DNA from: Macrostomum lignano
Taxonomy: Eukaryota
NCBI GenBank assembly: GCA_002269645.1
Contig: NIVC01000716.1
Coordinates: 83,426-147,425, forward strand
Length of the DNA stretch: 64,000 nt
Direction: 5' to 3'
Below the pieces are notes generated by a model. The model saw nothing but the letters and a program-made list of their open reading frames with translations, was not told the origin of the DNA and did not search any database. The stretch's first letter is position 1, and each line of letters starts with the position of its first letter. Position numbers and translations under genes: made by a program. Positions 14,030 through 59,925 of this stretch are shown here, piece by piece.

Positions 14030-15518
14030 TCTCAGCTGATCTGCCACTCTGCTCCTGAATATGGCCATCTGATCCTGAATATGGCTATCTGATCCTGAAT
14101 ATGGCTATCTGATCCTGAATATGGCTATCTGATCCTGAATCTGCCACTCTGATCCTGAATATGGCTATCTGATCCTGAATCTGCCACTCTGATCCTGAAT
14201 ATGGCCATCTGATCCTGAATCTGCCACTCTGATCCTGAATCTGCCACTCTGATCCTGAATATGGCCATCTGATCCTGAATCTGCCACTCTGATCCTGAAT
14301 ATGGCTATCTGATCCTGAATACAGCTATCTGATCCTGAATATGGCTATCTGATCCTGAATACAGCTATCTGATCCTGAATATGGCTATCTGATCCTGAAT
14401 ACAGCTATCTGATCCTGAATACAGCTATCTGATCCTGAATATGGCTATCTGATCCTGAATACAGCTATCTGATCCTGAATATGGCTATCTGATCCTGAAT
14501 CTGCCACTCTGATCCTGAATATGGCTATCTGATCCTGAATCTGCCACTCTGATCCTGAATATGGCTATCTGATCCTGAATCTGCCACTCTGATCCTGAAT
14601 ATGGCTATCTGATCCTGAATACAGCTATCTGATCCTGAATATGGCTATCTGATCCTGAATACAGCTATCTGATCCTGAATATGGCTATCTGATCCTGAAT
14701 ACAGCTATCTGATCCTGAATATGGCTATCTGATCCTGAATACAGCTATCTGATCCTGAATATGGCTATCTGATCCTGAATACAGCTATCTGATCCTGAAT
14801 ATGGCTATCTGATCCTGAATCTGCCACTCTGATCCTGAATATGGCTATCTGATCCTGAATCTGCCACTCTGATCCTGAATATGGCTATCTGATCCTGAAT
14901 CTGCCACTCTGATCCTGAATCTGCCACTCTGATCCTGAATATGGCTATCTGATCCTGAATCTGCCACTCTGATCCTGAATATGGCTATCTGATCCTGAAT
15001 CTGCCATCTGATCCTGAATATGGCTATCTGATCCTGAATACAGCTATCTGATCCTGAATATGGCTATCTGATCCTGAATACAGCTATCTGATCCTGAATA
15101 TGGCTATCTGATCCTGAATATGGCTATCTGATCCTGAATACAGCTATCTGATCCTGAATATGGCTATCTGATCCTGAATACAGCTATCTGATCCTGAATA
15201 TGGCTATCTGATCCTGAATACAGCTATCTGATCCTGAATCTGCCACTCTGATCCTGAATCTGCCACTCTGATCCTGAATATGGCTATCTGATCCTGAATC
15301 TGCCACTCTGATCCTGAATATGGCTATCTGATCCTGAATCTGCCACTCTGATCCTGAATCTGCCACTCTGATCCTGAATATGGCTATCTGATCCTGAATC
15401 TGCCACTCTGATCCTGAATATGGCTATCTGATCCTGAATCTGCCACTCTGATCCTGAATATGGCTATCTGATCCTGAATCTGCCACTCTGATCCTGAATA
15501 TGGCTATCTGATCCTGAA
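14030..15518. repeat. 20-bp minisatellite: constant CTGATCCTGAAT plus one of three 8-mers (ATGGCTAT / ACAGCTAT / CTGCCACT)
   Basis: About 74 copies read directly. Confidence 0.96.
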
Positions 15519-22189: not shown

Positions 22190-22412
22190 CAGAGGCAAAG
22201 CCCAATGCTAAGGCAGAGGCTAATTCTAAGGCTGATGCTAAGGCAGAGGCTAATACTAAGGCTGATGCTAAGGCAGAGGCTAATACTAAGGCTGATGCTG
22301 AGGCAGAGGCTAATGCTGAGGCTGATACTGAGGCAAAGGCTAATACTGAGGCTGATGCTGAGGCAGAGGCTAATACTGAGGCTGATGCTGAGGCAGAAGC
22401 TAATGCTAGGGC
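22190..22412. repeat. 30-bp tandem repeat (GCTGATGCTGAGGCAGAGGCTAATACTGAG-like) inside the transposon block
   Basis: About 7 copies; variants are almost all G/A differences. Confidence 0.9.
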
Positions 22413-22439
22413 AAAAACCTTCAGCTTGCAACATGGAGC

Positions 22440-23620
22440 CAGATAGCAGAGATCTTGTTTCCTCCCATGGATATATACTAGGATGTGATGCAATGGAGAA
22501 AAGGGAGGTTTGAAATACTAGAAATGTATGGTTTACAACAGCACTATTCAGTGCAATGGCAGCATTAGGGAATCCCTATATGATAAATATTATCCACAAA
22601 AGACATAATTGGGAGCAAATACAGATAGTGTTCTATGCAAACAGATTGCTTAAGAAGTAAAGCAGGATGCAAGAGAGAAAAGTATATATTGGCAAAAGCA
22701 ATTGTAGAGGAACCTGTCAGTAGTCATGTTGATAAATTGCATGTTCAAGTGCCATATGTAAAGCACTTGGCAGGCCAAGACAACCAACTTCAACAGAAAG
22801 ACCAGCATTAGCACCTACTAACATTGGTATTTGAGCTCACTAAAGACAATATCCCACAACTGTTTCTATATGCCAATGTGCCTATTGCATGCATAGGCAA
22901 GAGGCAAATTATTGCAAGAAAAGAGCAGCTAATAGCACTTGGCCATTGCACCCAATGGTTCCTTAAGTGGTATGTTTATTGTTGCCAAAGAGATATTCAT
23001 ATAGGTATATAGCATTCATGGTATTCAAGCTAGTAGTATATAGTGCATTAGTCTACTAGCCAATATCATTATGTCTAATTGAGCAAAACTAGATTATGTG
23101 GCTATATTTGGCTCCTTGAAATGCTTGCTTGGTCTCACATGTGATGTATACTATGGCAGACTTTGTAGCAGCAACATAGTAAGTACATTCTTAAACATTC
23201 TTGAACATCATTGCCAATGGCTGTGTATTTCACTATAGCCAAGCTATCTATGATCACATTGACCTATTAGGTCTAATCTAAGCCTATTCTATAGACAGCT
23301 ATGCAAATATTGTGTTGCCAACTTAAAGCACTACCATATCTGCCATTTGGAAAGATGGAAGAAACATTTGAAGCACTCTGCCCATAGGCAACTATGCCAC
23401 AATTAACTGAGCTATGTAATTATTTTGACTAGACATAGATATGGCTGTCACACCTAGTCTAGTCTATAGAGTTGCTATTAGCATAGCAAAAGATTGACAG
23501 AACAAATAATGCTATTAAAAGTTGACACTATTCTATGCAAGCATGTTGACATTGGCATGAACATTTTTGCATTGATTAGCCTCTTGGCAGAGCAGACTCA
23601 CATTCTAGGATTGCAAATTT
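22440..23620 (+). mobile_element. Decayed MULE (Mutator-like) transposase fossil
   Basis: Broken frames give QWFL..G.F.VAKEIFI*VYSIHG (about 22955-23022; MULE W..DGTF...F.QLY.IHG) and DRTNNAIKS*HYSMQ (23496-23540; RTNN.IE.WH). Many stops. Confidence 0.7.
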
Positions 23621-24139
23621 GATATTTGATACCTATCCCAAGTACTAAGTCCAAAGCCAATATGATATAGTACTATAAGCTACTTGGGCTACTTATGTAG
23701 CTAGTAATCTTACAAGCTATAGTCTGCTATAATCATTTAATGTCATAACAATAATACATTCCTTTATTCTATTGCAAATTTTGGCATTATTCTCAAATTG
23801 TTCATTGAATCATTTTTTCAATATTTTTTTGCATTTTCCTACTTAAAATGCTGATTTTAGAATGTTTAGACATGCCTGAAGCTATTAAAACAGTAAAAAT
23901 AGCAACTTTGTTTTTTAGCACTTTTTCTTTCTTTAGCAATTCCTAAGGATTCCTAATAATTCAAAGTTTCAAAGTTTTTTATTTCTGATTGGTACAAAAA
24001 TGTGGGAAACAAAAAACAATCAATTAGAAACAATGATGCAATGAATGTCAAGACTTGTGTAAAAACTCAGCAGGGGTAATAATGGGCAATCTAGTATATC
24101 AAGTGGCCAAAAGCATTGATAGGATAAAGCGATTACCAA

Positions 24140-24800
24140 AGAAATTCTTCCAGATATGTGGCAAACAGCACATTGCTAGTTCCATGCAAAAAGCAAAATT
24201 TGGTTTTCATGTGGTCCTAAGTTCCTTCAATGTGGTTTGTATAGATGTGCAATGCATTTGGGTTGACAAAATATAGGCAAAGGTTGACTAATGACTATCA
24301 AGTGGTTTGGCAATGAGTTGTATGCCTGCCAGCCATTTATTATGATGTATGACCCTGGTAAGATATAATGTGCGATGATAGGGAGCATGGTGGTAGCCAG
24401 GGGCGTAGCCAAGAATTTCCTATGGGGGGGTACACCAAGGTAAAAGCGCTATGACAAAGTCACATGGTAGCATGTATAGCAACAAAGGGCAACAAAAAAG
24501 TTTTGGTCAGGCTCTTCAGGGGGGATACATCCCCCCTATCCCCCATCCCTATGCCCCTGGTGGCAGCCTTATGGTCTAGAACAACTACTATCATACACTG
24601 AGTTGAACAATACTTCACCATGCTAGGCACCTACTGACCAGGTTAGAAGGCATCCTGATAGAACTTACAGTGCATGAAATAAGACTTGTCAACCTCTATA
24701 TCAACACTAGAGCTACCAAGCTAGACTAGGTGGTCTTCTAGCACCTGGGCATATATATTGCAAATAAAGTTTTGCCAGTCTACTATAGCCTGGTAGCCAA
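24140..24800 (-). mobile_element. Decayed Merlin (IS1016/ISXO2-like DDE) transposase fossil, interrupted by a MITE
   Basis: Minus strand reads IEVDKSYFMHCKF...GQ*V...VLDHK[MITE]ATTMLPIIAHYILPGSYIIINGWQAYNSLPNH...YTNHIEGT*DHMKTKF...YLEEFLW. This matches the ISXO2 motifs VEVDESYF, PGS.I.SDGW.AY, HTN.IEG.W and YL.EF.WR. Confidence 0.82.
24398..24559. mobile_element. 162-bp hAT-type MITE
   Basis: TIRs CAGGGGCGTAG ... CTATGCCCCTG (one CpG transition); 8-bp TSD GTGGTAGC (24390-24397) / GTGGCAGC (24560-24567). Confidence 0.85.
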
Positions 24801-25097
24801 TACCTGTCTAGATACAACACTCAGACTGTTTTGCTTGCAGTGTCTACCAATATACAAAATATGACAATCTGCTATAAGGATAGTTTTGATGCTTCAAAGA
24901 ACAAATCTTTGTGCATAGACACTTGAATATGGCATACTATGCAAGCCCAAGCAATACCATCAATGTACTAGTCTCTAGGATTGTATTATAGATGCATAGG
25001 TGCATCACTAGCCCTACAATCATATTGGTTCTTAAAGAGTCAGTAGATTGCTAGCCATTCCATAGTCTAGATCATGCTGGGTGCATACCTAAACAAT

Positions 25098-25745
25098 AGT
25101 GTTCCGCTATAGCCATAGCTAGGGCTACGGGATCCTAGGGCAAATACAGTAAAATAGGTGCCTACAGCAGCTACGGATACACCTACGGTAGCTAGCTGCT
25201 CTTACGGCTATGACTACAGAAATATGGTAGTTGCTGTCATATTCTGTAGATTCCCATAGCCATAGTTATTAATATTAAAAAATTGAAAAAATATTAGAAA
25301 CAGGTAGAATAAAACAAAGATATTTTTGGTAAACTGTATTATCAGCCTATAAACTTATAAAATATATATAAAAAAGTACAATAAAACACTAGCAAACTCT
25401 AATTTTAATTTATGTAAAAATGTTTTGCGCTAGTACTTTCAGTAACGATTAAGACGTATTGTTGCTCTGAAAAAAGACAAAATATAATCTTACAAGGGCA
25501 ATCGAGTGTTTCTTTATTTTCTAACTTAATTTGCAATTTTTTAAGCACTAGGTTATCCTCTTGATTCAAAATATTTTGTTTTCTAGACTTTTTGTTAGAA
25601 CTATGGCTATGGCTACGGGAACTATATGGGAATATGGTAATTTTGAGGTCCCTATAACTATGGAATACAGAGAATTGGAATAAGCCATAGTTTTGCTTAT
25701 GGCTATGACTACAGTATATGGACCCTCCTTATGGCGGAACAGTAC
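25098..25745. mobile_element. Probable non-autonomous DNA element with degenerate TIRs and decayed (GGCTAC)n subterminal motifs
   Basis: Left GTGTTCCGCTATA versus right TATGGCGGAACAG. GGCTACGG/GGCTATGG/GACTACAG motifs occur at both ends. No TSD confirmed. Confidence 0.45.
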
Positions 25746-26519
25746 CAAACAAAAATTGAATAATTACAAATGCACAGCTAAAAAAAATTGAGTGCATACC
25801 TATTCTCAAAACTACACCAATGTTGCCACAATAAATGATGTTTTTCTACATTGTGACAATAAATGATCTTTTTAAATTGAAAAAATGGACCCTTTTGGCA
25901 TATAATTTAGTAATTTTTTTGTTTTTTTGGCAATACTATTTACAGTAGAAAATTGATACAAACAAAGATTTGTTTAAATGCTTTATTACATTAAAATGCT
26001 TTATTGAAAAATGGGAAAGCTTGAAATTTATGCTTAAAATGAATTTGTTTATCCTTTTTCTATTTTATAATAACTTTTCCACATTATTCTATAAAGTGTA
26101 TGCCAGGCATGCATACATACTATTTTCTTAGAAGTGATGCACACCAACTGTGCATGCTTACTTTTGGCATGCAAGGCCAATGCACACCCAAATTTTTGGG
26201 CATATACTATATGATCCAGAGTGTGGCAGCCATTCAATAGTTTGTGAGATGTCCTATGTTAGCCTAGCTAACTTTGCCATTGGCATGTTTCTTTTACCTT
26301 AATAGTATTATGTAACAAATTCAGACTCACAATAAATGATGATGCTATAAGATAGCCTCCTAGTATACTATTGATAGATTTTGCTAGATGGTCAACTATG
26401 GACCATCATTCAAGAAGTATGATTTCAAGGCTTAATGAAAATTGCATTATCAATATATAATTAAGATTGAAAAACTTTATAACAAAAAGCTCAATGATGT
26501 ATACAACTATGCTAAAAAG

Positions 26520-26995
26520 AATGTCTAGCAGCAGCTTGACGGCTTGACGTTAATAGCAATTACATATGGCATTTGGTCAGAAAAGGGCTTGTCTTTTTCA
26601 TCATTTTTTAGCATAATTTTCATCACCCCACACTTAAAGGTTACGAACAAGATAAAAAAATAATTAAACGCGGGAAAGTTCATGATCGCCGTTCATACTT
26701 CTAACATTGCAAGTGTGCAAAGTGATATTCTCATTGACTAGAATATTAAGAGTAGGGCCTAAAACAATAGCAATTGTTATTGACAATGCTACTAATATGC
26801 TAAAGGCAGTGTGCACAATGCTACCTTCTTCAGCCAATGGTGCTGCAGCTGATTCCAATTTCTTAGAAAATCTCACAGCTCATAAGCTGAATCTAATTGT
26901 GCAAGCTGCATTAAAGTAGCAGCCATCTGTTGAGGCAATTATTAGCAAATGCCAACACTTTGTTAGCTCAATGCACAATTCAACAATATCTCTAG
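26520..26995 (+). mobile_element. hAT transposase fragment
   Basis: IAITYGIWS (about 26553) and KTIAIVIDNATNMLKAV...LTAHKLNLIVQAAL...IISKCQHFV match the hAT motifs T.D.W, VTDNAANM and C.AH.LNL.V. Confidence 0.72.
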
Positions 26996-29900
26996 TATAA
27001 TCTATATTCATATTCATATGATATGAATATATAGGCCTATATATAATTCTTTCTTCACAGACTTCACTTTGAATAAAAATTATAATTTTTTCTTAATATC
27101 AATATCATTATCAGTTTATTCACAAACTAAAAATAGGCTATACCCTACATTATAAACAGTTCTAATCGAAAGGTTTAAATTAAAACTATAGATGTTAGTT
27201 TTAAACATAGGAAAAACATAGACATAAAAATATAAAATATAGATATAGGTCATAGGATTAGGAACACAATTAAAATTGATAATGCCGTTGATGGTGACGT
27301 TCATTATGATTTAGGCCCTAATTTTTAACATTGAAGAAACCGATGGGCCGCGTTGTTCTAAAAAATACAAATCGAATTCGACATAAACTATCGATAGCTG
27401 AGATAGCTATGATCGCTATCTCAGATATTAACATTGATATCGATGTCGATATAATTTTATTTTTTTCTAAGATTATGTCATGAGGACGGGGGGTTTTAAG
27501 GGTAGTAGTAGTAGTAGTAAGTTTGGTGCAGGCAAGAAGCCTGTTTGGCCAATAATTTTCAATGCATTTATTAGTAATTCAAGAGTAGAAGGAAATATTT
27601 ATGCATAAGTACGTGAGTTTTGCAGTAATATAGTATTTGAAAGAGCGCCTAAATTTTTTCTACGAAACTTCAAACGATCTTTAACGACTAACGAAGCAAC
27701 GAAGGGTCTCTCTCTTGGCTGCTGGTTGAATTTTAGGCGCTTTTCGGCCGTTCAAATCGGTGCGGTTTCCGGCGATTCAAACAAACTCGGGCGAATTCTC
27801 GGCTTGCAGATAACGGGAGCCCCGGCTGCTGAGTTCCTCAAGCTCAGGGGGAGGGGAGCTGTGGTCGCGGCTGAGCGGTCTAGTTTTGCCGAGAATTGAA
27901 TGCCGAATGCAGAAATTGTAGCTGATTACGGGAAACTTAAGATAAACTAATTTGTCGAGAGTGTTACTGTAAGTAGTAGTTCGCTGCCGCCACCGCGGTT
28001 ATACGCGGGAAAAGCTCTAAAGCTCAAAACTAGCTCGAGTTGCCCTTAGAACTTCTCTTGAAACCACCGAGGGTCAAAATAAAACTTCCGAAGTCACAAA
28101 GGCTAAGACACCGTTTCAAACACACACAAAGTTAAATAGGCCGGAATAGATACTTGGCCGGTGGCTCAATATTATTATTATTGCACAAAACTGATTCTGG
28201 CACTCAACTGTAAACAATTAGGTCCACTATTATTATGATAACGTGAATTAGTTGTTCAGGAGAGGAGCTGGTCGGGTAGGGAAGCAGGGCTTACGGTAGG
28301 GTCCCCTCGAATATCTGGAGCTCGGAGCTCGGGACGGGGTGAGTTCAAACGAGAAGGGGGTTCCAGTCGAGTCTGGCTGGGAAATGAGGGGCGTAGACTC
28401 TTAAATAACGCTCTCATGAGCCACCGAGAGGAAAGGGGTTACACCGGGGTGGGAAGAGAGTTACACACAGAGAAAAAGGGGTCGAGTACACCGGGTGGTG
28501 ACGATTAAACACCGGGTGTTAACCCTATTCAAAGCACAGTAAAACAAAGTTACACGGAGAGTGGGAGCCCAAAAACACTAAGAGGCTTTTCATATTACCA
28601 ATTCCAGAATCAGAATCGGTTCGGATCTTCCAAGAAAAACAGCAGTATAACTATTTAATTCTGTTGAATGTTTGACTGCCTAATTAACAACCTCAGCACA
28701 ATTTTTCAATTTCTTCTTGGCGATTGTCATTCAATAATAAAAACTTTATAGCACGTATCTCCCTCTAGTTATGGAACCAGAACAAGCAATATAAAGGCCC
28801 TAAGAGGAAAAAGGGGATTTCCACGCAGGGAAATGACGTCAGCTAGCATGCGTAATCCACACAGAGGAAATAACATTACATTCGGTGGGAATAGTGGGAG
28901 GCCTCGCCTACCATGCACTATTAAAAGCCGATTTAAAAAAACTTGCATCGACGAATAAAATACGAGCGTAGTTAAACAACCATGCATGCATAAACCACAA
29001 CGAAAAAGCCTTTAGGCACAATAAAGACATTTTTTGTTCGAAATGAAGTATTTATTAACGATTTTAAAGATTTTTTATGTTTGATGCCAAATCGGTTCTT
29101 CGGCTATCTACAGCTTGCTCGATCCATAAGGCTCGTAGATCCCTTGCACGCGGGCAACATGGTTTATTGCTTCTGATGTCCCAGAGATCTAACTTCTCGT
29201 GAAAACGGTCCTATATGCAACAATAAACAAGCACTGCATGGCAGCTCTTGTTGGTTAGCTTCTGCTGACTGTCTCGTAGACTGATGCTAGCCGTCTGCAT
29301 ATACATATACATGTAAACGTTGTACACAGAATCATTGGTGGCGCCAGCGGCCTGGCTCACTTCCAATTGCCTCCTCCCCAAAAAATTGCGCCTCTAAAAA
29401 AAACAAAATTAAAAGCCAACCAAATTCAATGAATTTCAGAAATTCTTGCCACCCTGATATAGGACATTGCATCAGAAACAAAGGTACATATAAATCTGTG
29501 ACGATATTGGCGTGGCGGCCTCTAGAACGAGCGAAGACAAATGAATGCGGCAGAGGTGAAATTGTAGCGGTAGCACTTGGCACTTGGCAGTAATTTTAAT
29601 TAGCGTTAATACGATATCGCTGGCTGTAGACTTAATTTATTGTTAACCAAAGTACAAGACGTAACAATGCACTGGCGGCTACACAACAATAAAGTATAGC
29701 TTATGTAGTAGGAGTGGCGTGGCTGAGATTGGCAGAGGCGTGGCTAGAGCCGTGGCGGAGAGAGAGAAGGCGAGCGAATAAGTAAAGGCAGCCAGAGCCT
29801 GCAGTCAACACGGGTTCGCAAGGGTGCGAGAGTCTGAACGAAGTCTAAACAGGCAAGGGCCCCAAACGGGGTGGCGGCGGAGCAAAGGCCTAGAGAAATT

Positions 29901-40450: not shown

Positions 40451-40463
40451 ATGGAGGATTTTT
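40451..40463 (+). CDS. Candidate alternative first coding micro-exon C of PKA-C (MEDF)
   Basis: ATGGAGGATTTTT|gtaagt, phase 1; upstream acceptor ccttttcag ending at 40387. Short, so chance occurrence is possible. Confidence 0.38.
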
Positions 40464-42789: not shown

Positions 42790-45725
42790 GACTGCACTGC
42801 CAATAGTCACCCATCACTCCCTGACACTGACTGCCAGTAGTCACCTATCACTCCCTGACACTGACTGCCAATAGTCACCCATCACCCCTGACTCTGACTG
42901 CCAGTAGTCACCTATCACTCCCTGACACTGACTGCCAGTAGTCACCCATCACTCCCTGACACTGACTGCCAGTAGTCACCTATCACTCCCTGACACTGAC
43001 TGCCAGTAGTCACCTATCACTCCCTGACACTGACTGCCAATAGTCCCATCACTCCCTGACTCTGACTGCTAGTCACCTATCACTCCCTGACACTGACTGC
43101 CAATAGTTCCATCACTCCCTGACTCTGACTGCCAGTAGTCACCTATCACTCCCTGACACTGACTGCCAGTAGTCACCTATCACTCCCTGACACTGACTGC
43201 CAATAGTCACCCATCACCCCTGACACTGACTGCTAGTCACCTATCACTCCCTGACACTGACTGCTAGTCACCTATCACTCCCTGACACTGACTGCCAGTA
43301 GTCACCCATCACTCCCTGACTCTGACTGCTAGTCACCTATCACTCCCTGACACTGACTGCCAATAGTTCCATCACTCCCTGACTCTGACTGCCAGTAGTC
43401 ACCTATCACTCCCTGACACTGACTGCCAGTAGTCACCTATCACTCCCTGACACTGACTGCCAATAGTTCCATCACTCCCTGACTCTGACTGCCAGTAGTC
43501 ACCTATCACTCCCTGACTCTGACTGCCAATAGTCCCATCACTCCCTGACTCTGACTGCTAGTCACCTATCACTCCCTGACACTGACTGCCAATAGTCACC
43601 CATCACACCCTGACTCTGACTGCCAGTAGTCACCCATCACTCCCTGACTCTGACTGCCAATAGTCACCCATCACTCCCTGACTCTGACTGCCAGTAGTCA
43701 CCTATCACTCCCTGACACTGACTGCCAATAGTCACCTATCACTCCCTGACACTGACTGCCAGTAGTCACCCATCACTTCCTGACTCTGACTGCCAGTAGT
43801 CACCTATCACTCCCTGACACTGACTGCCAATAGTCACCTATCACTCCCTGACACTGACTGCCAATAGTCACCCATCACTCCCTGACTCTGACTGCCAGTA
43901 GTCACCTATCACTCCCTGACACTGACTGCCAATAGTCACCCATCACTCCCTGACACTGACTGCCAGTAGTCACCCATCACTCCCTGACTCTGACTGCCAG
44001 TAGTCACCCATCACTCCCTGACACTGACTGCCAGTAGTCACCCATCACTCCCTGACTCTGACTGCCAGTAGTCACCTATCACTCCCTGACACTGACTGCC
44101 AATAGTCACCTATCACTCCCTGACACTAACTGCGAATAGTCACCCATCACTCCCTGACTCTGACTGCCAGTAGTCACCCATCACTCCCTGACTCTGACTG
44201 CCAATAGTCACCCATCACTCCCTGACACTGACTGCCAGTAGTCACCCATCACTCCCTGACACTGACTGCCAGTAGTCACCCATCACTCCCTGACACTGAC
44301 TGCCAGTAGTCCCCCATCACTCCCTGACACTGACTGCCAGTAGTCACCCATCACTCCCTGACTCTGACTGCCAATAGTCACCCATCACTCCCTGACACTG
44401 ACTGCCAGTAGTCACCCATCACTCCCTGACACTGACTGCCAGTAGTCACCTATCACTCCCTGACACTGACTGCCAATAGTCACCCATCACTCCCTGACAC
44501 TGACTGCCAGTAGTCACCTATCACTCCCTGACACTGACTGCCAATAGTCACCCATCACACCCTGACTCTGACTGCCAGTAGTCACCCATCACTCCCTGAC
44601 TCTGACTGCCAGTAGTCACCCATCACTCCCTGACTCTGACTTCCAGTAGTCACCCATCACTCCCTGACACTGACTGCCAGTAGTCACCCATCACTCCCTG
44701 ACACTGACTGCCAGTAGTCACCCATCACTCCTGACACTGACTGCTAGTCACCTATCACTCCCTGACACTGACTGCCAGTAGTCACCCATCACTCCCTGAC
44801 TCTGACTGCTAGTCACCTATCACTCCCTGACACTGACTGCCAGTAGTCACCCATCACTCCCTGACACTGACTGCCAGTAGTCACCCATCACTCCCTGACA
44901 CTGACTGCCAATAGTCCCATCACTCCCTGACACTGACTGCCAGTAGTCACCCATCACTCCCTGACACTGACTGCCAGTAGTCACCCATCACTCCCTGACT
45001 CTGACTGCCAATAGTCACCCATCATTCCCTGACACTGACTGCCAGTACTCACCCATCACTCCTGACACTGACTGCCAGTAGTCACCCATCACCCCTGACT
45101 CTGACTGCCAGTAGTCACCTATCACTCCCTGACTCTGACTGCCAGTAGTCACCCATCACTCCCTGACACTGACTGCCAGTAGTCACCCATCACTCCTGAC
45201 ACTGACTGCTAGTCACCTATCACTCCCTGACACTGACTGCCAGTAGTCACCCATCACTCCCTGACTCTGACTGCTAGTCACCTATCACTCCTTGACTCTG
45301 ACTGCCAGTAGTCACCCATCACTCCCTGACACTGACTGCCAGTAGTCACCCATCACTCCCTGACTCTGACTGCCAATAGTCACCCATCACTCCCTGACAC
45401 TGACTGCCAGTAGTCACCCATCACTCCCTGACACTGACTGCCAATAGTCACCCATCACTCTCTGACTCTGACTGCCAATAGTCACCCATCACTCCCTGAC
45501 ACTGACTGCCAGTAGTCACCCATCACTCCCTGACACTGACTGCCAGTAGTCACCCATCACTCCCTGACACTGACTGCCAGTACTCACCCATCACTCCTGA
45601 CACTGACTGCCAGTAGTCACCCATCACCCCTGACACTGACTGAAAGTAGTCACCCATCACTCCCTGACATTGACTGCCAGTAGTCAGCCATCACTCCTGA
45701 CACTGACTGCTAGTCACCTATCACT
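42790..45725. repeat. 34-bp intronic minisatellite (CTGACTGCCAGTAGTCACCCATCACTCCCTGACA)n, about 87 copies
   Basis: Read directly. Confidence 0.97.
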
Positions 45726-45784
45726 CCCATTACTGCTGCTGTGCCACCCGCTAACCCTCTTTGTCCCCACCTTCCCAATGCCAG

Positions 45785-45975: not shown

Positions 45976-45999
45976 GCGAGTGTTTTGAACTTTTCTCCA

Positions 46000-46405
46000 G
46001 AATCGCCCCAACCCACAGCTGGGAATCGCCCCAACCCACAGCTGAGAATCGCCCCAATCCACAGCTGAGAATCGCCACAAACCACAGCTGAGAATCGCCA
46101 CAAACCACAGCTGAGAATCGCCACAAACCACAGCTGAGAATCGCCCCAACCCACAGCTGAGAATCGCCCCAATCCACAGCTGAGAATCGCCACAAACCAC
46201 AGCTGAGAATCGCCCCAAACCACAGCTGAGAATCGCCACAAACCACAGCTGAGAATCGCCCCAAACCACAGCTGAGAATCGCCCCAATCCACAGCTGAGA
46301 ATCGCCACAAACCACAGCTGAGAATCGCCCCAAACCACAGCTGAGAATCGCCCCAAACCACAGCTGGAAAGCGCCACAAACCACAGCTGAGAATCGCCCC
46401 AATCC
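46000..46405. repeat. 23-bp intronic minisatellite (CACAGCTGAGAATCGCCCCAAAC)n
   Basis: About 17 copies read directly. Confidence 0.95.
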
Positions 46406-46842
46406 AGAGCTTTGAATCTCAGTCGCTCTGAAAACTATGCCATAACCTCTAAAGGTTACAGTGCTAGACTCATCCAGACAAAATTTTCTATTTTAGCTAA
46501 ATTAATAACATTATTGTCTGAGCATTTGACTGACAGTTGAAGTTTGTCCATAGCAAACACAGCCAGCCGTTAACGAGTGACACAGTAGATAATTGGAAGG
46601 CGTGTTTCGGGCCCGTTTCAAGTGACTTGATTGACAGCTCTTCATTATTCTCGATCTCTAAGTCTTGATTGTGTTGACTGTTTTCCAGACTCTCTTAATT
46701 TGATGAAGCAAATTTGAGCTGGGACTTTTGGGAGACTGGGCTGACGCCAAAGACTGTGGGCCGCCAATTTCTTTTAGTAGGCTTAGCAATTTGTTTAATC
46801 CGCTTTCACTAATTCCCTTCCTTTGTCCGCGCCCTGTTCCAG

Positions 46843-46941
46843 GTTGTCAAGCTGAAGCAGGTCGAGCACACGCTCAACGAGAAGCGAATCCTGCAGGCCA
46901 TCAGCTTTCCGTTTCTAGTCAGGCTGGACTACCACTTCAAG
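46843..46941 (+). CDS. PRKACA: PKA-C exon ([33 protein letters not shown]), 99 nt
   Basis: gttccag|GTT ... AAG|gtgagc; near-identical to the PKA-C B/C-helix region. Confidence 0.97.
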
Positions 46942-47039: not shown

Positions 47040-49135
47040 GAGGAAGTCAGCCTCCCCGATCCTCAGACTGAGCAGTCAGCTTCCCAGATCCTAAGGTTGA
47101 GCAGTCAGCTTCCCAGATCCTCAGACTGAGCAGTTAGCTTCCCCGATCCTCAGACTGAGCAGTCAGCTTCCCAGATCCTAAGGTTGAGCAGTCAGCTTCC
47201 CAGATCCTCAGACTGAGCAGTTAGCTTCCCCGATCCTAAGGTTGAGCAGTCAGCTTCCCAGATCCTCAGACTGAGCAGTTAGCTTCCCCGATCCTAAGGT
47301 TGAGCAGTCAGCCTCCCAGATCCTCAGACTGAGCAGTTAGCTTCCCAGGTCTTAAGGTTGAGCAGTCAGCTTCCCAGGTTCTCAGGTTGAGCAGTCAGCC
47401 CCCCAGATTCTCAGATTGAGCAGTCAGCCCCCCAGGTTCTCAGGTTGAGCAGTCAGCCCCCAGATTCTCAGATTGAGCAGTCAGCTTCTCAGGTTGAGCA
47501 GTCAGCCCCCAGATTCTCAGATTGAGCAGTCAGCTTCCCAGGTTCTCAGGTTGAGCAGTCAGCCCCCCAGATTCTCAGATTGAGCAGTCAGCTTCTCAGG
47601 TTGAGCAGTCAGCCCCTCAGATTCTCAGATTGAGCAGTCAGCTTCCCAGGTTCTCAGGTTGAGCAGTCAGCCCCCAGATTCTCAGATTGAGCAGTCAGCT
47701 TCTCAGGTTGAGCAGTCAGCCCCTCAGATTCTCAGATTGAGCAGTCAGCTTCCCAGGTTCTCAGGTTGAGCAGTCAGCCCCCCAGATTCTCAGATTGAGC
47801 AGTCAGCTTCTCAGGTTGAGCAGTCAGCCCCCAGATTCTCAGATTGAGCAGTCAGCTTCTCAGGTTCTCAGGTTGAGCAGTCAGCCCCCAGATTCTCAGA
47901 TTGAGCAGTCAGCTTCCCAGGTTCTCAGGTTGAGCAGTCAGCCCACCAGATTCTCAGATTGAGCAGTCAGCTTCCCAGGTTCTCAGGTTGAGTAGTCAGC
48001 CCACCAGATTCTCAGATTGAGCAGTCAGCTTCCCAGGTTCTCAGGTTGAGCAGTCAGCTTCCCAGATCCTCAGACTGAGCAGTTAGCTTCCCCGATCCTA
48101 AGGTTGAGCAGTCAGCTTCCCAGATCCTCAGACTGAGCAGTTAGCTTCCCCGATCCTAAGGTTGAGCAGTCAGCCTCCCAGATCCTCAGACTGAGCAGTT
48201 AGCTTCCCAGGTCTTAAGGTTGAGCAGTCAGCTTCCCAGGTTCTCAGGTTGAGCAGTCAGCCCCCCAGATTCTCAGATTGAGCAGTCAGCTTCCCAGGTT
48301 CTCAGGTTGAGCAGTCAGCCCCCCAGATTCTCAGATTGAGCAGTCAGCTTCTCAGGTTGAGCAGTCAGCCCCTCAGATTCTCAGATTGAGCAGTCAGCTT
48401 CCCAGGTTCTCAGGTTGAGCAGTCAGCCCCCCAGATTCTCAGATTGAGCAGTCAGCTTCTCAGGTTGAGCAGTCAGCCCCTCAGATTCTCAGATTGAGCA
48501 GTCAGCTTCCCAGGTTCCCAGGTTGAGCAGTCAGCCCCCCAGATTCTCAGATTGAGCAGTCAGCTTCTCAGGTTGAGCAGTCAGCCCCTCAGATTCTCAG
48601 ATTGAGCAGTCAGCTTCCCAGGTTCTCAGGTTGAGCAGTCAGCCCCCCAGATTCTCAGATTGAGCAGTCAGCTTCTCAGGTTGAGCAGTCAGCCCCCCAG
48701 ATTCTCAGATTGAGCAGTCAGCTTCTCAGGTTCTCAGGTTGAGCAGTCAGCCCCCAGATTCTCAGATTGAGCAGTCAGCTTCCCAGGTTCTCAGGTTGAG
48801 CAGTCAGCCCACCAGATTCTCAGATTGAGCAGTCAGCTTCCCAGGTTCTCAGGTTGAGTAGTCAGCCCACCAGATTCTCAGATTGAGCAGTCAGCTTCCC
48901 AGGTTCTCAGGTTGAGCAGTCAGCGGCCCCCAGATTCTCAGGTTGAGCAGTCAGCCCACCAGATTCTCAGATTGAGCAGTCAGCTTCCCAGGTTCTCAGG
49001 TTGAGCAGTCAGCTTTCCAGATCCTCAGATCAAAATTTTCAGGTCAATCAGACTAAGCAGTCAGCTTCCCAGATTCTCAGACTGAGCAGTTAGTCAGCTT
49101 GAGCAGTCAGTCAGCTTGAGCAGTCAGCTTCCCAG
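47040..49135. repeat. About 29-bp intronic minisatellite (TGAGCAGTCAGCTTCCCAGGTTCTCAGGT variants) with higher-order duplications
   Basis: Read directly; blocks such as 47090-47400 recur near 48050-48260. Confidence 0.95.
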
Positions 49136-49815: not shown

Positions 49816-49898
49816 GACAACAGCAACCTCTACATGGTGCTGGAGTTTGTCAACGGCGGAGAGATGTTCTCCCACCTGCGCCGCATCGGCAGGTTCAG
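49816..49898 (+). CDS. PRKACA: PKA-C exon ([27 protein letters not shown]), 83 nt
   Basis: ccctcag|GAC ... TTCAG|gtgagc; phase 2. Confidence 0.97.
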
Positions 49899-49989
49899 GT
49901 GAGCGACTGGCCGGTCTCCGATTGCTCACTGGGTCACGTGACTATTGCATGCATGCCATTCAGCCACAGGGTGTAGCGTGCCTTCTCCT

Positions 49990-50560
49990 GTCTGTACACA
50001 TGTTCCCAACCTGACTGTACACATGTTCCCAACCTGACTGTACACATGTCCCCAACCTGACTGTACACATGTCCCCAACCTGACTGTACACATGTCCCCA
50101 ACCTGACTGTACACATGTCCCCAACCTGACTGTAGACATGTCCCCAACCTGACTGTACACATGTCCCCAACCTGACTGTAGACATGTCCCCAACCTGACT
50201 GTAGACATGTCCCTAACCTGACTGTAGACATGTCCCCAACCTGACTGTAGACATGTCCCTAACCTGACTGTAGACATGTCCCCAACCTGACTGTAGACAT
50301 GTCCCCAACCTGACTGTACACATGTCCCCAACCACATGTCCCCAACCTGACTGTAGACATGTCCCCAACCTGACTGTAGACATGTCCCCAACCTGACTGT
50401 AGACATGTCCCCAACCTGACTGTACACATGTCCCCAACCTGACTGTACACATGTCCCAAACCTGACTGTACACATGTCCCCAACCTGACTGTACACATGT
50501 CCCCAACCATCCTGTACACATGTCCCCAAATACATGTCCCCAACCATCCTGTACACATGT
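49990..50560. repeat. 23-bp intronic minisatellite (CCCAACCTGACTGTACACATGTC)n
   Basis: About 24 copies read directly. Confidence 0.95.
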
Positions 50561-50688: not shown

Positions 50689-50815
50689 CGAGCCAGTAAC
50701 CAGACTGTACGGAGCCCAGGTCACCCTGGCGTTCGAGTATTTGCACAGCCTAGACCTGATTTACCGGGATCTGAAGCCTGAGAATATCCTCATTGCTGGC
50801 GACGGATTCCTGAAG
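50689..50815 (+). CDS. PRKACA: PKA-C mutually exclusive exon A ([43 protein letters not shown]), 127 nt
   Basis: aattccag|C GAG ... AAG|gtaatc; intact YRDLKPEN; phases 2/0 fit both flanking exons. Confidence 0.9.
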
Positions 50816-51170
50816 GTAATCTGGCCGCCCGCCAGTCCGGCGGCTCAGCGCCAAGATGAAGCCGCAGTTATCGGATCAATAGCAGCAATTCAATAGCATT
50901 AATAAGCCATAACTGAACTGTTTGAAGTGGCAAGAGGGCTGGCCCAGTCTCGCTTGGCATGATTGCGTACATGTTTATTTCTAGGTTTGACCACTTTGTT
51001 AACTTTACTCATTTATTTATTGAGCATTTCTATTTTTAATATCCGCGTGCGGCTTTATGACTCAGCTAACAGGCGAATCCCTGCTTTGCCCTGCCGCTTT
51101 ACCTGCACCGCAACTGCTGCAGTATTGGATGCTAATTCTTAATCCTTCACTTCCTCCCCCGCGATAACAG

Positions 51171-51297
51171 CGAGCCCCATTCGAGGTTCTATGGCAGCCA
51201 GATTGTGCTCGGCTTTGAGTACCTGCACAGCTTGGACCTCATCTACCGGGATTTGAAGCCTGAGAATCTGCTGATTGATAGCACTGGCTACATCAAA
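51171..51297 (+). CDS. PRKACA: PKA-C mutually exclusive exon B ([43 protein letters not shown]), 127 nt
   Basis: gataacag|C GAG ... AAA|gtaaga; same length and phases as exon A; closer to the canonical PKA-C sequence. Confidence 0.93.
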
Positions 51298-51579
51298 GTA
51301 AGACTTCGCAGCCCTGCTCAGCGTCCGTGTTGTCTGCGGCCGCCGTGTTGTGTTGTTCTTTGCTATGCGAGACATTGTCCGCCCTTCAGCGGGCAGGGCA
51401 GCTAGTCAGCTTAAATGTGCTGAATTCGTTACTACAAGTATTCACCATGCGCAACGCACGATGTTTAAATCCTGCTATTAGTTTGTAGTTATCCATGTTT
51501 TTCTAATCTTCTTAATCTACAGTCACTGCGCCCCCTCTGTTTTGCAGCTCTCTTTAATCCTGAAATTGCCTTATCCCGA

Positions 51580-52395
51580 TTCTGCTCCATTGTGAGACTG
51601 CTGAGTCCCAATCTGAGTCCCGATTCTGCTCCATTGTGAGACTGCTGAGTCCCGATTCTGCTCCATTGTGAGACTGCTGAGTCCCAATCTGAGTCCCGAT
51701 TCTGCTCCATTGTGAGACTGCTGAGTCCCGATTCTGCTCCATTGTGAGACTGCTGAGTCCCGATTCTGCTCCATTGTGAGACTGCTGAGTCCCAATCTGA
51801 GTCCCGATTCTGCTCCATTGTGAGACTGCTGAATCCCGATTCTGCTCCATTGTGAGACTGCTGAGTCCCAATCTGAGTCCCGATTCTGCTCCATTGTGAG
51901 ACTGCTGAGTCCCAATCTGAGTCCCGATTCTGCTCTATTGTGAGACTGCTGAGTCCCAATCTGAATCCCGATTCTGCTCCATTGTGAAACTGCTGAATCC
52001 CAATCTGACTGAATCCCGATCTGACTGAGTTCCAATCTGACTGAGTCCCAATCTGACTGAGTCCCAATCTGAATCATGATCTGACTGAATCCAGATCTGA
52101 CTGAATCCCAATCTGACTGAATCCCGATCTGACTGAATCCAGATCTGACTGAATCCCAATCTGACTGAATCCCGATCTGACTGAATCCAGATCTGATTGA
52201 GTCCCGATCTGACTGAGTCCCAATCTGAGTCCCGATTCTACTTCATTGTGAGACTGCTGAGTCCCAATCTGAGTCCCGATCTGACTGAGTCCCGATCTAA
52301 CTGAATCCCGATCTGACTGAATCCCTATCTGAATGAGTCCCGATCTGACTGAGTGCCGATCTGACTGAATCCCAATCTGACTGAGTGCCGATCTG
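51580..52395. repeat. Compound intronic minisatellite: 32-bp (GAGTCCCGATTCTGCTCCATTGTGAGACTGCT) +/- a 12-bp insert, then 16-bp (GAATCCCGATCTGACT)
   Basis: Read directly. Confidence 0.92.
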
Positions 52396-52640
52396 ACGAA
52401 CTCCGAAATCGCAGTTACTATTAGTTTATTACAGTGCACTGCATTCTCGTGCTTGTATTTATAAATTTATATTGATTAATTGTTAGTCAATTTGTTGTCC
52501 TTTTAGCTGATGGTAATTTTGCGTCGGTGTCGTCGGTGAAATGCGTTAAAACTTTCAAGTCCCACAAAATTCAGAAATTATAGTTAAACAAGTCTTTGAA
52601 GCAGTTGGGGCTTCACCTGAGTGTCCGTTCGCTTTTTCAG

Positions 52641-52736
52641 GTGACGGACTTCGGCTTCGCCAAGCGGGTCAAAGGCCGCACTTGGACTCTCTGCGGCACT
52701 CCTGAGTACCTGGCGCCCGAGATCATCCTGAGCAAG
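52641..52736 (+). CDS. PRKACA: PKA-C exon ([32 protein letters not shown]), 96 nt
   Basis: tttttcag|GTG ... AAG|gtgaga; DFG, activation-loop RTWT and APE motifs. Confidence 0.98.
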
Positions 52737-52769: not shown

Positions 52770-55672
52770 TGAGCCCCCATGATCCTCCAGCTGCCCACCG
52801 CTCACCCCATGATCCTCCAGCTGCCTACCGCTCACCCCATGATCCTTCAGCTGCCCACCGCTCACCCCATTATCCTCCAGCTGCCCACCGCTCACCCCAT
52901 GATCCTCCAGCTGCCTACCGCTCACCCCATGATCCTTCAGCTGCCCACCGCTCACCCCATGATCCTCCAGCTGCCTACCGCTCACCCCATGATCCTTCAG
53001 CTGCCCACCGCTCACCCCATGATCCTCCAGCTGCCCACCGCTCACCCCATGATCCTTCAGCTGCCCACCGCTCACCCCATGATCCTCCAGCTGCCTACCG
53101 CTCACCCCATGATCCTTCAGCTGCCCACCGCTCACCCCATGATCCTCCAGCTGCCCACCGCTCACCCCATGATCCTTCAGCTGCCCACCGCTCACCCCAT
53201 GATCCTCCAGCTGCCCACCGCTCACCCCATGATCCTCCAGCTGCCTACCGCTCACCCCATGATCCTTCAGCTGCCCACCGCTCACCCCATGATCCTCCAG
53301 CTGCCCACCGCTCACCCCATGATCATTCAGCTGCCCACCGCTCACCCCATGATCCTTCAGCTGCCCACCGCTCACCCCATTATCCTCCAGCTGCCCACCG
53401 CTCACCCCATGATCCTCCAGCTGCCTACCGCTCACCCCATGATCCTCCAGCTGCCCACCGCTCACCCCATGATCCTCCAGCTGCCTACCGCTCACCCCAT
53501 GATCCTCCAGCTGCCCACCGCTCACCCCATGATCCTCCAGCTGCCCACCGCTCACCCCATGATCCTCCAGCTGCCTACCGCTCACCCCATGATCATTCAG
53601 CTGCCCACCGCTCACCCCATGATCCTCCAGCTGCCCACCGCTCACCCCATGATCCTCCAGCTGCCTACCGCTCACCCCATGATCCTCCAGCTGCCCACCG
53701 CTCACCCCATGATCCTCCAGCTGCCCACCGCTCACCCCATGATCCTCCAGCTGCCCACCGCTCACCCCATGATCCTTCAGCTGCCCACCGCTCACCCCAT
53801 GATCCTCCAGCTGCCCACCGCTCACCCCATGATCCTCCAGCTGCCCACCGCTCACCCCATGATCCTCCAGCTGCCTACCGCTCACCCCATGATCCTTCAG
53901 CTGCCCACCGCTCACCCCATGATCCTCCAGCTGCCCACCGCTCACCCCATGATCCTCCAGCTGATCACCGCTCACCCCATGATCCTCCAGCTGCCTACCG
54001 CTCACCCCATGATCCTTCAGCTGCCCACCGCTCACCCCATGATCCTTCAGCTGCCCACCGCTCACCCCATGATCCTTCAGCTGCCCACCGCTCACCCCAT
54101 GATCCTCCAGCTGCCCACCACTCACCCCATGATCCTTCAGCTGCCCACCGCTCACCCCATGATCCTCCAGCTGCCCACCGCTCACCCCATGATCATTCAG
54201 CTGCCCACCGCTCACCCCATGATCCTTCAGCTGCCCACCGCTCACCCCATGATCATTCAGCTGCCCACCGCTCACCCCATGATCCTCCAGCTGCCCACCG
54301 CTCACCCCATGATCCTCCAGCTGCCCACCGCTCACCCCATGATCCTTCAGCTGCCCACCGCTCACCCCATGATCCTTCAGCTGCCCACCGCTCACCCCAT
54401 GATCCTTCAGCTGCCCACCGCTCACCCCATGATCATTCAGCTGCCCACCGCTCACCCCATGATCCTCCAGCTGCCCACCGCTCACCCCATGATCCTTCAG
54501 CTGCCCACCGCTCACCCCATGATCCTCCAGCTGCCCACCGCTCACCCCATGATCCTTCAGCTGCCCACCGCTCACCCCATTATCCTCCAGCTGCCCACCG
54601 CTCACCCCATGATCCTTCAGCTGCCCACCGCTCACCCCATGATCCTTCAGCTGCCCACCGCTCACCCCATGATCCTCCAGCTGCCCACCGCTCACCCCAT
54701 GATCCTTCAGCTGCCCACCGCTCACCCCATGATCCTCCAGCTGCCCACCGCTCACCCCATGATCCTTCAGCTGCCCACCGCTCACCCCATGATCATTCAG
54801 CTGCCCACCGCTCACCCCATGATCCTCCAGCTGCCCACCGCTCACCCCATGATCCTTCAGCTGCCCACCGCTCACCCCATGATCCTCCAGCTGCCCACCG
54901 CTCACCCCATGATCCTTCAGCTGCCCACCGCTTACCCCATGATCCTCCAGCTGCCCACCGCTCACCCCATGATCCTTCAGCTGCCCACCGCTCACCCCAT
55001 GATCCTTCAGCTGCCCACCGCTCACCCCATGATCCTTCAGCTGCCCACCGCTCACCCCATGATCATTCAGCTGCCCACCGCTCACCCCATGATCCTCCAG
55101 CTGCCCACCGCTCACCCCATGATCCTTCAGCTGCCCACCGCTTACCCCATGATCCTTCAGCTGCCCACCGCTCACCCCATAATCCTCCAGCTCCCCACCG
55201 CTCACCCCATGATCCTTCAGCTGCCCACCGCTCACCCCATGATCCTCCAGCTGCCCACCGCTCACCCCATGATCCTTCAGCTGCCCACCGCTTACCCCAT
55301 GATCCTTCAGCTGCCCACCGCTCACCCCATGATCCTCCAGCTCCCCACCGCTCACCCCATGATCCTTCAGCTGCCCACCGCTCACCCCATGATCCTCCAG
55401 CTGCCCACCGCTCACCCCATGATCCTCCAGCTGCCCACCGCTCACCCCATGATCCTTCAGCTGCACACCGCTCACCCCATGATCCTTCAGCTGCCCACCG
55501 CTCACCCCATGATCCTCCAGCTGCCCACCGCTCACCCCATGATCCTCCAGCTGCCCACCGCTCACCCCATGATCCTTCAGCTGCACACCGCTCACCCCAT
55601 GATCCTTCAGCTGCCCACCGCTCACCCCATGATCCTCCAGCTGCCCACCGCTCACCCCATGATCCCTCTCAC
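52770..55672. repeat. 30-bp intronic minisatellite (CCCCATGATCCTCCAGCTGCCCACCGCTCA)n, about 97 copies
   Basis: Read directly; source of the 1029-aa and 1035-aa repeat ORFs. Confidence 0.98.
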
Positions 55673-58644: not shown

Positions 58645-58785
58645 GTGTACAAGAAGGAGGTCGAGGCGCCCTTCATCCCCAAGTCGAAGGGCCCGGGCGA
58701 CCCGTCCAACTTCGACGAATACGAGGAGGAGCCGCTGCGGATTGCCAGCTCTGAGAAGTGCGCCAAGGAATTCGCCGAGTTCTGA
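58645..58785 (+). CDS. PRKACA: PKA-C terminal exon ([46 protein letters not shown])
   Basis: gtccgccag|GTG; AGC C-tail with PFIP, FDEY and the terminal FxxF motif; TGA at 58783-58785. Confidence 0.97.
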
Positions 58786-58814
58786 GGCCCCCGGCGCGCG
58801 TTCGGGACAATTTG

Positions 58815-59082
58815 TCCGCCTGTCTGTCTGCCTGCCTGTCCACCTGTCTGCCTGCCTGTCCGCCTGTCTGTCTGCCTGCCTGTCCACCTGTCCGCCTGCC
58901 TGTCCGCCTGTCTGTCTGCCTGTCTGTCTGCCTGTCTGTCTGTCTGTCTGCCTGTCTGTCTGCCTGTCTGCCTGTCTGTCTGTCTGCCTGTCTGTCTGTC
59001 TGTCTGCCTGTCTGTCCGCCTGTCTGTCTGTCTGCCTGTCTGTCCGCCTGGCTGTTTGCCTGTCTGCCTGTCTGCCTGCCTG
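58815..59082. repeat. (CTGT/CCTG)n microsatellite in the PKA-C 3' UTR
   Basis: Read directly. Confidence 0.93.
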
Positions 59083-59369
59083 TGCTTCTTTGCTGTTTTT
59101 CTACGAACTTGACTCTTCTCCCTGTTCCCTCGACGTGTTCCTGTCCGACCTCAGTTTCTGTTTCCTTCCTGCTATTAACTTTTGTTCTGTTGCAGTTTCT
59201 GTCACTTTAGCCGTTCGCTCTATTGTTTATACTGTGAATTGTAATGCTATATTATTATTTCTATCCTCATTGTTTCTGCTAACGCTGGTGTACCGGCACT
59301 TCGGCCCATCGCGTGTCTGTCAGTCCAGTCCCGCCTGTCTGCCAGCCCAAGCATTAAACACCACCATGT

Positions 59370-59384: not shown

Positions 59385-59925
59385 ACTGGAGCCCATAAAC
59401 ACCCAACCCCATAAACACCCAACCCCATAAACACCCAACCCCATAAACACCCAACCCCATAAACACCCAACCCCATAAACACCCAACCCCATAAACACCC
59501 AACCCCATAAGCACCCAACCCCATAAACACCCAACCCCATAAACACCCAACCCCATAAGCACCCAACCCCATAAACACCCAACCCCATAAACACCCAACC
59601 CCATAAACACCCAACCCCATAAACACCCAACCCCATAAACACCCAACCCCATAAACACCCAACCCCATAAACACCCAACCCCATAAACACCCAAACCCAT
59701 AAACACCCAGCCCCATACACACAACCCCATAAACACCCAACCCCATACACACAACCCCATAAACAGCCAACCCCATAAACACCCAACCCCAGAAACACCC
59801 AAACCCATAAACACCCAACCCCATACACACAACCCCATAAACACCCAACCCCATACACACAACCCCATAAACACTCAACCCCATAAACACCCAACACCAT
59901 AAACACCCAACCCCATAAACACCCC
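59385..59925. repeat. 16-bp minisatellite (CCCCATAAACACCCAA)n
   Basis: About 33 copies read directly. Confidence 0.95.

Follow-up and report, generated by a model that had tools for sequence, protein, structure and literature searches.

Tandem-duplicated 127-nt exons in a protein kinase A catalytic subunit gene of the flatworm Macrostomum lignano: a probable either/or splice switch

The catalytic subunit of the cAMP-dependent kinase PKA (PKA-C) is the protein kinase of the textbooks, with a core that hardly varies among animals. In Aplysia californica, PKA-C is said to be made with alternative internal cassettes, A1 and A2 (reportedly Beushausen et al. 1988, Neuron 1:853, a title cited in PMC9531652). 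Here we describe a stretch of 64,000 nucleotides from the flatworm Macrostomum lignano (contig NIVC01000716.1), referred to below as the window, in which a PKA-C gene, Mlig033349g1, holds two 127-nt exons, A and B, where the vertebrate genes have one. We argue that this region is probably a two-member cluster of mutually exclusive tandem-duplicated exons, and we regard it as a flatworm instance of the splice switch known from Aplysia.

Tandem-duplicated-exon substitution is known from other genes, where adjacent homologous exons of equal length are used one at a time; such exons are usually ancient and tune one structural module (PMC9741552, PMC5740500). The exon structure of PKA-C is conserved across metazoans (PMC3625193), and the known splice variation of vertebrate PKA-C involves the 5′ exons (PMC5526564). 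Among parasitic flatworms, SmPKA-C of Schistosoma mansoni provides a comparison system (PMC2724707), and the splice variants reported for parasitic-flatworm PKA-C affect the N-terminus and not the exon discussed here. Our literature searches found no description of a PKA-C exon switch outside Aplysia, no paper on the three-exon cluster of Capitella or the three variants of Lineus that are presented below, and no account of the wider three-member spiralian cluster to which we relate the Macrostomum pair.

Positions 30451-64000 of the window are 100% identical to locus L001 of NIVC01000716.1, an M. lignano scaffold, and the gene that holds the exon pair is Mlig033349g1 (BOX15_Mlig033349g1), on the plus strand. 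We mapped its exons by translation and splice sites, and the start of exon 1 was taken from the annotated gene start. The isoform with exon B is the deposited protein PAA77915.1 across the whole query, which runs from exon 2 onwards, the N-terminus encoded by exon 1 lying outside it. A gapless alignment of the spliced protein covers residues 15-350 of mammalian PKA-C-alpha (E = 2e-194 against PDB chains), and the proteins nearest to it carry the name cAMP-dependent protein kinase catalytic subunit. Both isoforms have the catalytic loop, the DFG motif, the activation-loop threonine, and the C-terminal FxxF tail (ending EFAEF). The product of Mlig033349g1 is accordingly a PKA catalytic subunit, an AGC kinase of the C-alpha/C-beta-like kind. 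Because the alignment to PKA-C-alpha is gapless, the alternative exon can be placed at residues E140-K181, which include helix E, the catalytic loop, beta7, and beta8. The exon pair and its constitutive partners are as follows.

49816..49898, plus strand: constitutive exon 4, 27 residues and the AG of the Ser139 codon; shared upstream partner of A and B
50689..50815, plus strand: exon A, 127 nt, diverged I-type alternative (exon types are described below), residues 140-181, weak polypyrimidine tract, donor GTAATC
50816..51170, plus strand: A-B intron, 355 nt
51171..51297, plus strand: exon B, 127 nt, canonical C-type, used in the deposited model, stronger polypyrimidine tract, donor GTAAGA
52641..52736, plus strand: constitutive exon 6, DFG motif and activation segment, 32 residues; shared downstream partner of A and B

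An initial annotation, made from the letters of the window, had noticed two 127-nt exons of the same phase, 355 nt apart, each bordered by AG and GT and each with an intact YRDLKPEN, and we find all of this to be correct. Read in frame 2, A and B encode 42 residues each; they have 85 of 127 nucleotides and 29 of 42 amino acids in common, and 15 of the 29 codons that encode the same residue in both differ synonymously. Both exons match the PKA-C exons of other animals with tblastn E values of 1e-17 to 1e-25, and because of these values, together with the gapless alignment to PKA-C-alpha, the match is not one of chance. Joining the flanking exons to either A or B results in a complete PKA-C reading frame. 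Since 127 is not a multiple of 3, a transcript with both exons or with neither would be shifted out of frame, as the annotation also claimed, and stop codons are then reached within the next exons. From these observations, we conclude that A and B are tandem-duplicated homologous exons within one interval between constitutive exons 4 and 6.

The parallel with the Aplysia A1/A2 cassettes that the annotation had drawn is borne out by the Aplysia genome (locus L007), where two 127-nt exons occupy the same position, a canonical-like exon first (51201-51327) and a V-type exon (IVLVLEYLHHLDIMY) second (52170-52296). The second, V-type exon is the one used in RefSeq NP_001191420. V-type exons are also present in a cephalopod, in bivalves, in the annelids Capitella and Owenia, and in a bryozoan, and fused bivalve gene models show the canonical exon first and the V-type exon second. 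In Capitella teleta (KB301649.1), the interval from exon 4 to exon 6 holds three intact 127-nt exons with AG/GT borders, and the introns that part them measure 111 and 406 nt; the positions in the locus (L008) are these.

6709-6835: I-type exon
6947-7073: canonical exon
7480-7606: V-type exon

The deposited Capitella gene model uses the third (V-type) exon only. In Lineus longissimus, the RefSeq isoforms X1, X2, and X3 (P0311, P0314, and P0307) differ only at residues 164-203, within the alternative exon, where X1 is canonical, X2 is I-type, and X3 is a V-like variant. Isoform pairs from Owenia, Dreissena, and Mercenaria each differ only inside this exon as well. The parasitic flatworms Schistosoma, Opisthorchis, Paragonimus, Echinococcus, Taenia, and Hymenolepis have one exon here that is clearly I-type, with 35-37 of 42 residues identical to Lineus X2.

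Exon B has all of the canonical states (P141, H142, I150, S159, I163, L172, and I180), as do the canonical exons of Capitella and Lineus, and it is identical at 37-39 of 42 residues to Capitella exon 2 and Lineus X1. The A-type exons, by which we mean exon A and its counterparts in the other M. lignano PKA-C genes, have I172 and L180 throughout, and most paralogues also have V150, H159, V163, and a residue other than proline at 141. This is the I-type set, in which I172 and L180 are the constant states and the others the usual ones, and the A-type exons have I172 and L180, and for the most part V150, H159, and V163, in common with Lineus X2 and the exon of parasitic flatworms. Exon A of the window has I172, V150, and L180 of the I-type set but S159, I163, and P141, while the A exons of the paralogues have nearly the full set. 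The V-type signature (V153, L154, H159, I162, and M163) is absent from both A and B, and searches of three Macrostomum loci for a third, V-type exon or a relic of one found none, even at E < 1000. Judged by these residues, Macrostomum exon A is not the counterpart of the V-type cassette of Aplysia, and this would hold under either of the two origins that we weigh next.

On balance, we favor descent of the A/B pair from an old spiralian cluster of three exons (I-type, canonical, and V-type). The last ancestor that flatworms, annelids, nemerteans, and molluscs share would already have had such a cluster, and the present arrangements would then reflect losses, with Macrostomum having kept the first two members, Aplysia and bivalves a canonical-like and a V-type exon, and the parasitic flatworms the I-type exon only. 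The most serious alternative is that the exon was duplicated in tandem independently, in the lineage of flatworms or of Macrostomum, and that exon A resembles I-type exons through convergence; it is possible, though we think it somewhat the poorer explanation, and it is compatible with a working switch. A neighbor-joining tree of the exons speaks against it, in that A and B were sisters in 0 of 500 bootstraps; the V-type group had 87% support in the same tree. In the block Q149-I174, the less derived A-type exons differ at 1-2 positions from Lineus X2 or the parasitic-flatworm exon, while B-type exons differ at five. The order of a divergent exon followed by a canonical one in Macrostomum also matches the order of I-type and canonical exons in Capitella. 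Fitch parsimony required 105 steps for the ancient I/C/V cluster, 107 for a duplication specific to Macrostomum, and 108 for one specific to flatworms.

Several observations weigh against this deep homology and toward a separate duplication. The parsimony gap is only 2-3 steps, and the tree places Macrostomum A among the I-type exons weakly, with a bootstrap value below 40% for the I-type group. A-type exons show no excess of identity to I-type exons (27-33 of 42) over canonical exons (28-32 of 42), and the residue changes that A and I-type exons share are conservative and could recur; I172 is not confined to Spiralia, as a hemichordate isoform shows. The Echinococcus locus (L006) has a single exon, and no second copy or relic was found in it, even at E < 1000. 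The evidence from Lineus consists of isoform variants. The annotation had offered either an old spiralian switch or a convergent duplication and had proposed an exon-level phylogeny; in the tree A and B are not sisters, its I-type grouping of A is weakly supported, and overall the old switch fits better, if modestly, with exon A matching the I-type and not the divergent V-type cassette of Aplysia. Under either origin the duplication must be old, since A and B have reached saturation at silent sites.

Additional evidence for the pair comes from within the M. lignano genome. There are five M. lignano PKA-C loci in our data, in three paralogue groups consisting of the window locus and L005, L002, and L003/L004. 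L005 is a duplicate of the window locus (98-99% identical). All five loci have an A-type exon followed by a B-type exon, each of 127 nt with intact AG/GT borders, at distances of 317-1602 nt. Between groups, silent sites are near saturation (dS of 0.5-1.0 in the constitutive exons, where dS and dN are the synonymous and nonsynonymous divergence), and blastn of the interval from exon 4 to exon 6 recovered exons 4, A, B, and 6 together with one 30-nt intronic match (E = 0.001). Sensitive blastn found no further conserved intronic elements between the paralogue groups, whose introns are unalignable. The between-group dN/dS came to 0.09-0.19 in the A-type exons, compared with 0.02-0.03 in the B-type and ~0.04 in the constitutive exons, and the protein encoded by A-type exons changes 4-7 times faster than that of the B-type or constitutive exons. 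Because between-group dN/dS is low while the introns can no longer be aligned, we conclude that the A-type exons have been retained by selection. The annotation had claimed selection on both exons, and the between-group values agree with it; a dN/dS near 1 for exon A, which it named as telling against its proposal, is far from what the A-to-A comparisons gave. By these comparisons, the A/B pair is older than the split of the M. lignano PKA-C paralogues.

The annotation of the M. lignano genome was built from RNA-seq assemblies with StringTie/TACO (isoform-frac 0.75), followed by TransDecoder (PMC5730564), and its models show one isoform per gene; SRP082513 and SRR2682326 are among the RNA-seq data behind it. 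An A-type exon is used in the deposited models Mlig002500, Mlig001428, and Mlig032677, and a B-type exon in Mlig033349 (the window gene) and Mlig001504. UniProt model A0A1I8HI32 also uses an A-type exon, the one nearest to exon A of the window, with which it is identical at 37 of 42 residues. No deposited M. lignano model has both exons. Both exon types are thus used in M. lignano transcripts, and the pair is kept across paralogues; splicing of A-type exons into mature mRNAs is documented in the paralogues only.

A different reading of these models is that exon A of the window gene has dropped out of splicing and persists as a relic, in which case the gene would be B-only and labor would be divided among paralogues and not by splicing. 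We consider this unlikely, and the observations that count for it, and so against a working pair in the window gene, are the following. The sole deposited, RNA-seq-based model of the gene uses B, and our protein searches found no protein or transcript with exon A of the window gene; a short protein query centered on exon A returned 170 short candidates, all of them canonical, with no A-type fragment. In the full-length PKA-C searches, ticks and molluscs outranked distant flatworms because of the high conservation, and no planarian or other free-living flatworm genes were listed. The acceptor region of exon A is purine-rich, with 45% pyrimidines compared with 70% for B, and its GTAATC donor is the weaker one. 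Most of the amino acid change in exon A falls on the branch to the window gene, where a dN of ~0.145 compared with a dS of ~0.29 for the constitutive exons gives a rough dN/dS of ~0.5, versus a dN of 0.02 and a dN/dS of ~0.1 on the L003 branch; these values were obtained by splitting pairwise dN over a three-taxon tree of only 42 codons and are imprecise. Judged by this branch, constraint on exon A in the window gene may be relaxed. The window locus and L005 differ by 1.7% in non-repeat introns and 0.8% in exons, which is too close for a test of recent selection, and the A-B intron is not unusually conserved between them.

What makes a relic unlikely is, first, that the reading frame and both splice sites of exon A are intact in the window locus and in L005. 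Second, the A exon of A0A1I8HI32 shares the derived residues of exon A of the window, and that model uses its A exon; the residues common to the two therefore arose before the genes split and were then kept. Third, the genome annotation retained an isoform only if it reached ≥75% of the major one, and a minor A isoform would therefore have been dropped from it. Finally, A-type donors are non-consensus (GTTTCA and GTTTAT) also in paralogues where A is the main form. An assembly artefact, with two haplotypes or paralogues collapsed side by side, has next to nothing to recommend it beyond the known redundancy of the Mlig_3_7 assembly and the recent large duplication of the genome, because A and B are only 67% identical in DNA (33% diverged) with 13 amino acid differences, the A-then-B order is seen in five loci that were assembled separately and whose introns differ, and the exon is multiplied also in Aplysia and Capitella, all of which bears out the annotation's own view that misassembly was improbable.

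If the pair works as a switch, splicing would join exon 4 to A or B and then to exon 6. Transcripts with both exons or with neither would be frameshifted and truncated, and we infer that nonsense-mediated decay would remove them; only mRNAs with one of the two exons would therefore encode a kinase. Exon B would be the conserved default in the window gene, and exon A an alternative that evolves quickly and predominates in other paralogues. Of the other ways in which exclusivity might be enforced, steric exclusion is not supported because the 355-nt A-B intron is too long, nor is U12/U2 incompatibility, both introns being ordinary GT-AG introns without U12-type signals. Competing RNA structure of the Dscam type is likewise not supported, since an inverted-repeat search gave pairs at chance level only; in the exon 4-exon 6 interval of three paralogue loci, the candidate docking/selector pairs were only 14-19 nt long and 81-86% complementary, lay in non-corresponding places, and were accompanied by minisatellite self-matches. 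In L002 (Mlig002500), 19 nt in the B-type exon (13908-13926) are 84% complementary to intronic positions 14539-14557, 612 nt downstream, and the window has no counterpart of this pair. The frame rule that follows from the length of 127 nt is the only candidate mechanism of exclusivity visible in the sequence.

The heading of the initial annotation spoke of two alternative catalytic loops, and this does not hold, because A and B do not differ in the loop Y164-N171 (YRDLKPEN). Its text placed the differences in helix E and beta7-beta8, and that is where the 13 differences among the 42 residues are located: at 142, 143, 145, 148, 150, 151, and 153 in helix E, at 172 in beta7, at 175-177 in the turn, and at 179-180 in beta8. 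Relative to B, exon A carries I150V, L172I, I180L, and Y179F in the core region, H142V and F145L at the start of helix E, and a change from DST to AGD in the beta7-beta8 turn. The V-type exon of other phyla varies at 153/154 and 162/163. Every catalytic residue is common to the A and B isoforms.

In mammalian PKA-C, L172, L173, and I174 are the beta7 part of the catalytic spine, and I150 bridges helix E to that spine, such that the I150A substitution inactivates the enzyme; I180 and L162 belong to the same synchronously moving (dynamic) hydrophobic core (PMC5384802). The PKA-C hydrophobic core couples ATP binding to the binding of substrate and regulator, and NMR and mutagenesis tie residues 150, 172, and 180 to the coupling of ATP and substrate binding. 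Thus, the choice of exon would spare the chemistry, its effects falling on the core network and on two patches of the surface. Because the catalytic residues are shared while residues 150, 172, and 180 of the hydrophobic core differ, the switch would most likely retune kinetics, ATP-substrate cooperativity, or release of the regulatory subunit, and not the chemistry of the reaction. The A1 and A2 forms of Aplysia reportedly differ modestly in kinetics and holoenzyme activation.

A broader view, which we put forward tentatively, is that PKA-C of the spiralian ancestor had a three-way either/or switch that swapped residues 150, 153/154, 162/163, 172, and 180, that lineages kept different subsets of it, and that the Macrostomum paralogues set different defaults while their A-type exons diversified. 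The subsets would be three exons in Capitella (and three isoform variants in Lineus), two in molluscs, the first two in Macrostomum, and one in the parasitic flatworms, and if this is true, Macrostomum would have as many as eight naturally occurring versions of the kinase core. The comparison suggests that the Aplysia A1/A2 switch may be one remnant of an older and wider cluster, and such a cluster would explain the unusual ENILID/QVVL form of schistosome and tapeworm PKA-C, a drug-target candidate. Isoforms that swap only helix E, beta7, and beta8 would be natural probes of how tuning of the hydrophobic core affects kinase behavior. There is also a practical side, in that with one annotated isoform per gene, PKA studies and RNAi or knock-out designs in M. 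lignano, a model for regeneration and stem cells, would miss half of the products.

The remaining coding exons of Mlig033349g1 are listed here.

40451..40463, plus strand: exon 1, ATGGAGGATTTTT then a GT donor; encodes MEDF and the first base of an F codon, as in PAA77915.1
45785..45975, plus strand: constitutive exon 2, A-helix, Gly-rich loop, and K72 region; GC donor
46843..46941, plus strand: constitutive exon 3, 33 residues
55712..55984, plus strand: constitutive exon 7, corresponding to two vertebrate exons fused
58645..58785, plus strand: exon 8, the last coding exon, including the stop codon (after KEFAEF)

The annotated gene start (L001:10001) is position 40451 of the window, and exon 1 reads through to the donor gtaagt, in the frame ATG GAG GAT TTT T. 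The intron after exon 2 is of the GC-AG kind, with the donor AAG/GCGAGT (GC at 45976-45977), and its junction is used in the deposited RNA-seq-based protein. Minisatellite arrays with units of 12-108 nt fill almost all of the gene's introns and the sequence that immediately follows the stop codon (42791-45728, 45999-46418, 47045-49090, 49987-50529, 51574-52397, 52775-55665, 58813-59083, and 59392-59924); the array at 52775-55665, for example, consists of 96 copies of a 30-nt unit. The largest of these arrays give rise to spurious open reading frames of up to ~1000 amino acids on both strands and to a strong local GC skew. Elsewhere in the window, positions 20001-28000 are AT-rich, with a GC content of 0.29-0.36 compared with ~0.5 in the rest.

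Some of the PKA-C models collected from other organisms contain repeats of a different kind. In a PRKACA model of Branchiostoma lanceolatum (P0012), the next segment is present twice, as copies of 24 residues each, which points to an independent tandem duplication in amphioxus that involved part of the activation-segment exon and possibly made an either/or pair. Large kinase blocks are repeated in identical or near-identical form in the models P0001 (Ixodes scapularis), P0002 (Mauremys mutica), P0004 (Mycteria americana), P0011, and P0089, and these look like assembly or annotation artefacts, not alternative exons. Two further sequences, P0010 (from the EukProt transcriptome of Siedleckia nematoides) and P0062 (from Logan), are animal-type PKA-C in which an ENILID...GFLK exon is similar to the Macrostomum A-type at 172, 179, and 180; as the data set of P0010 is that of an apicomplexan parasite of polychaetes, this sequence is probably host contamination.

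Set beside the known systems, the Macrostomum pair differs from general cases of tandem exons in that it lies in an invertebrate kinase core and that no competing RNA structure of the Dscam type was found for it. Exon 6 of vertebrate PRKACA and PRKACB has the same boundaries and phase as A and B but is a single copy, as the annotation had stated for PRKACA, and between exon B and mammalian C-alpha there are 7 differences in 42 residues. Parasitic-flatworm PKA-C is like Macrostomum exon A in being I-type and unlike Macrostomum in having a single exon. Aplysia shares with Macrostomum the length of 127 nt, the phase, the position at residues 140-181, the two tandem copies, the constitutive flanks, and probably the use of one copy per mRNA. 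Its divergent exon, however, is V-type and lies downstream, whereas that of Macrostomum is I-type and lies upstream, and exon A, with I172, V150, and L180 and its own changes at 142, 145, and 179, is unlike the Aplysia V-type exon in sequence. In Capitella, the first two exons correspond to A and B of Macrostomum in order and in diagnostic residues; Macrostomum has two members where Capitella has three, and the Macrostomum A-type exons are far more derived and vary from paralogue to paralogue.

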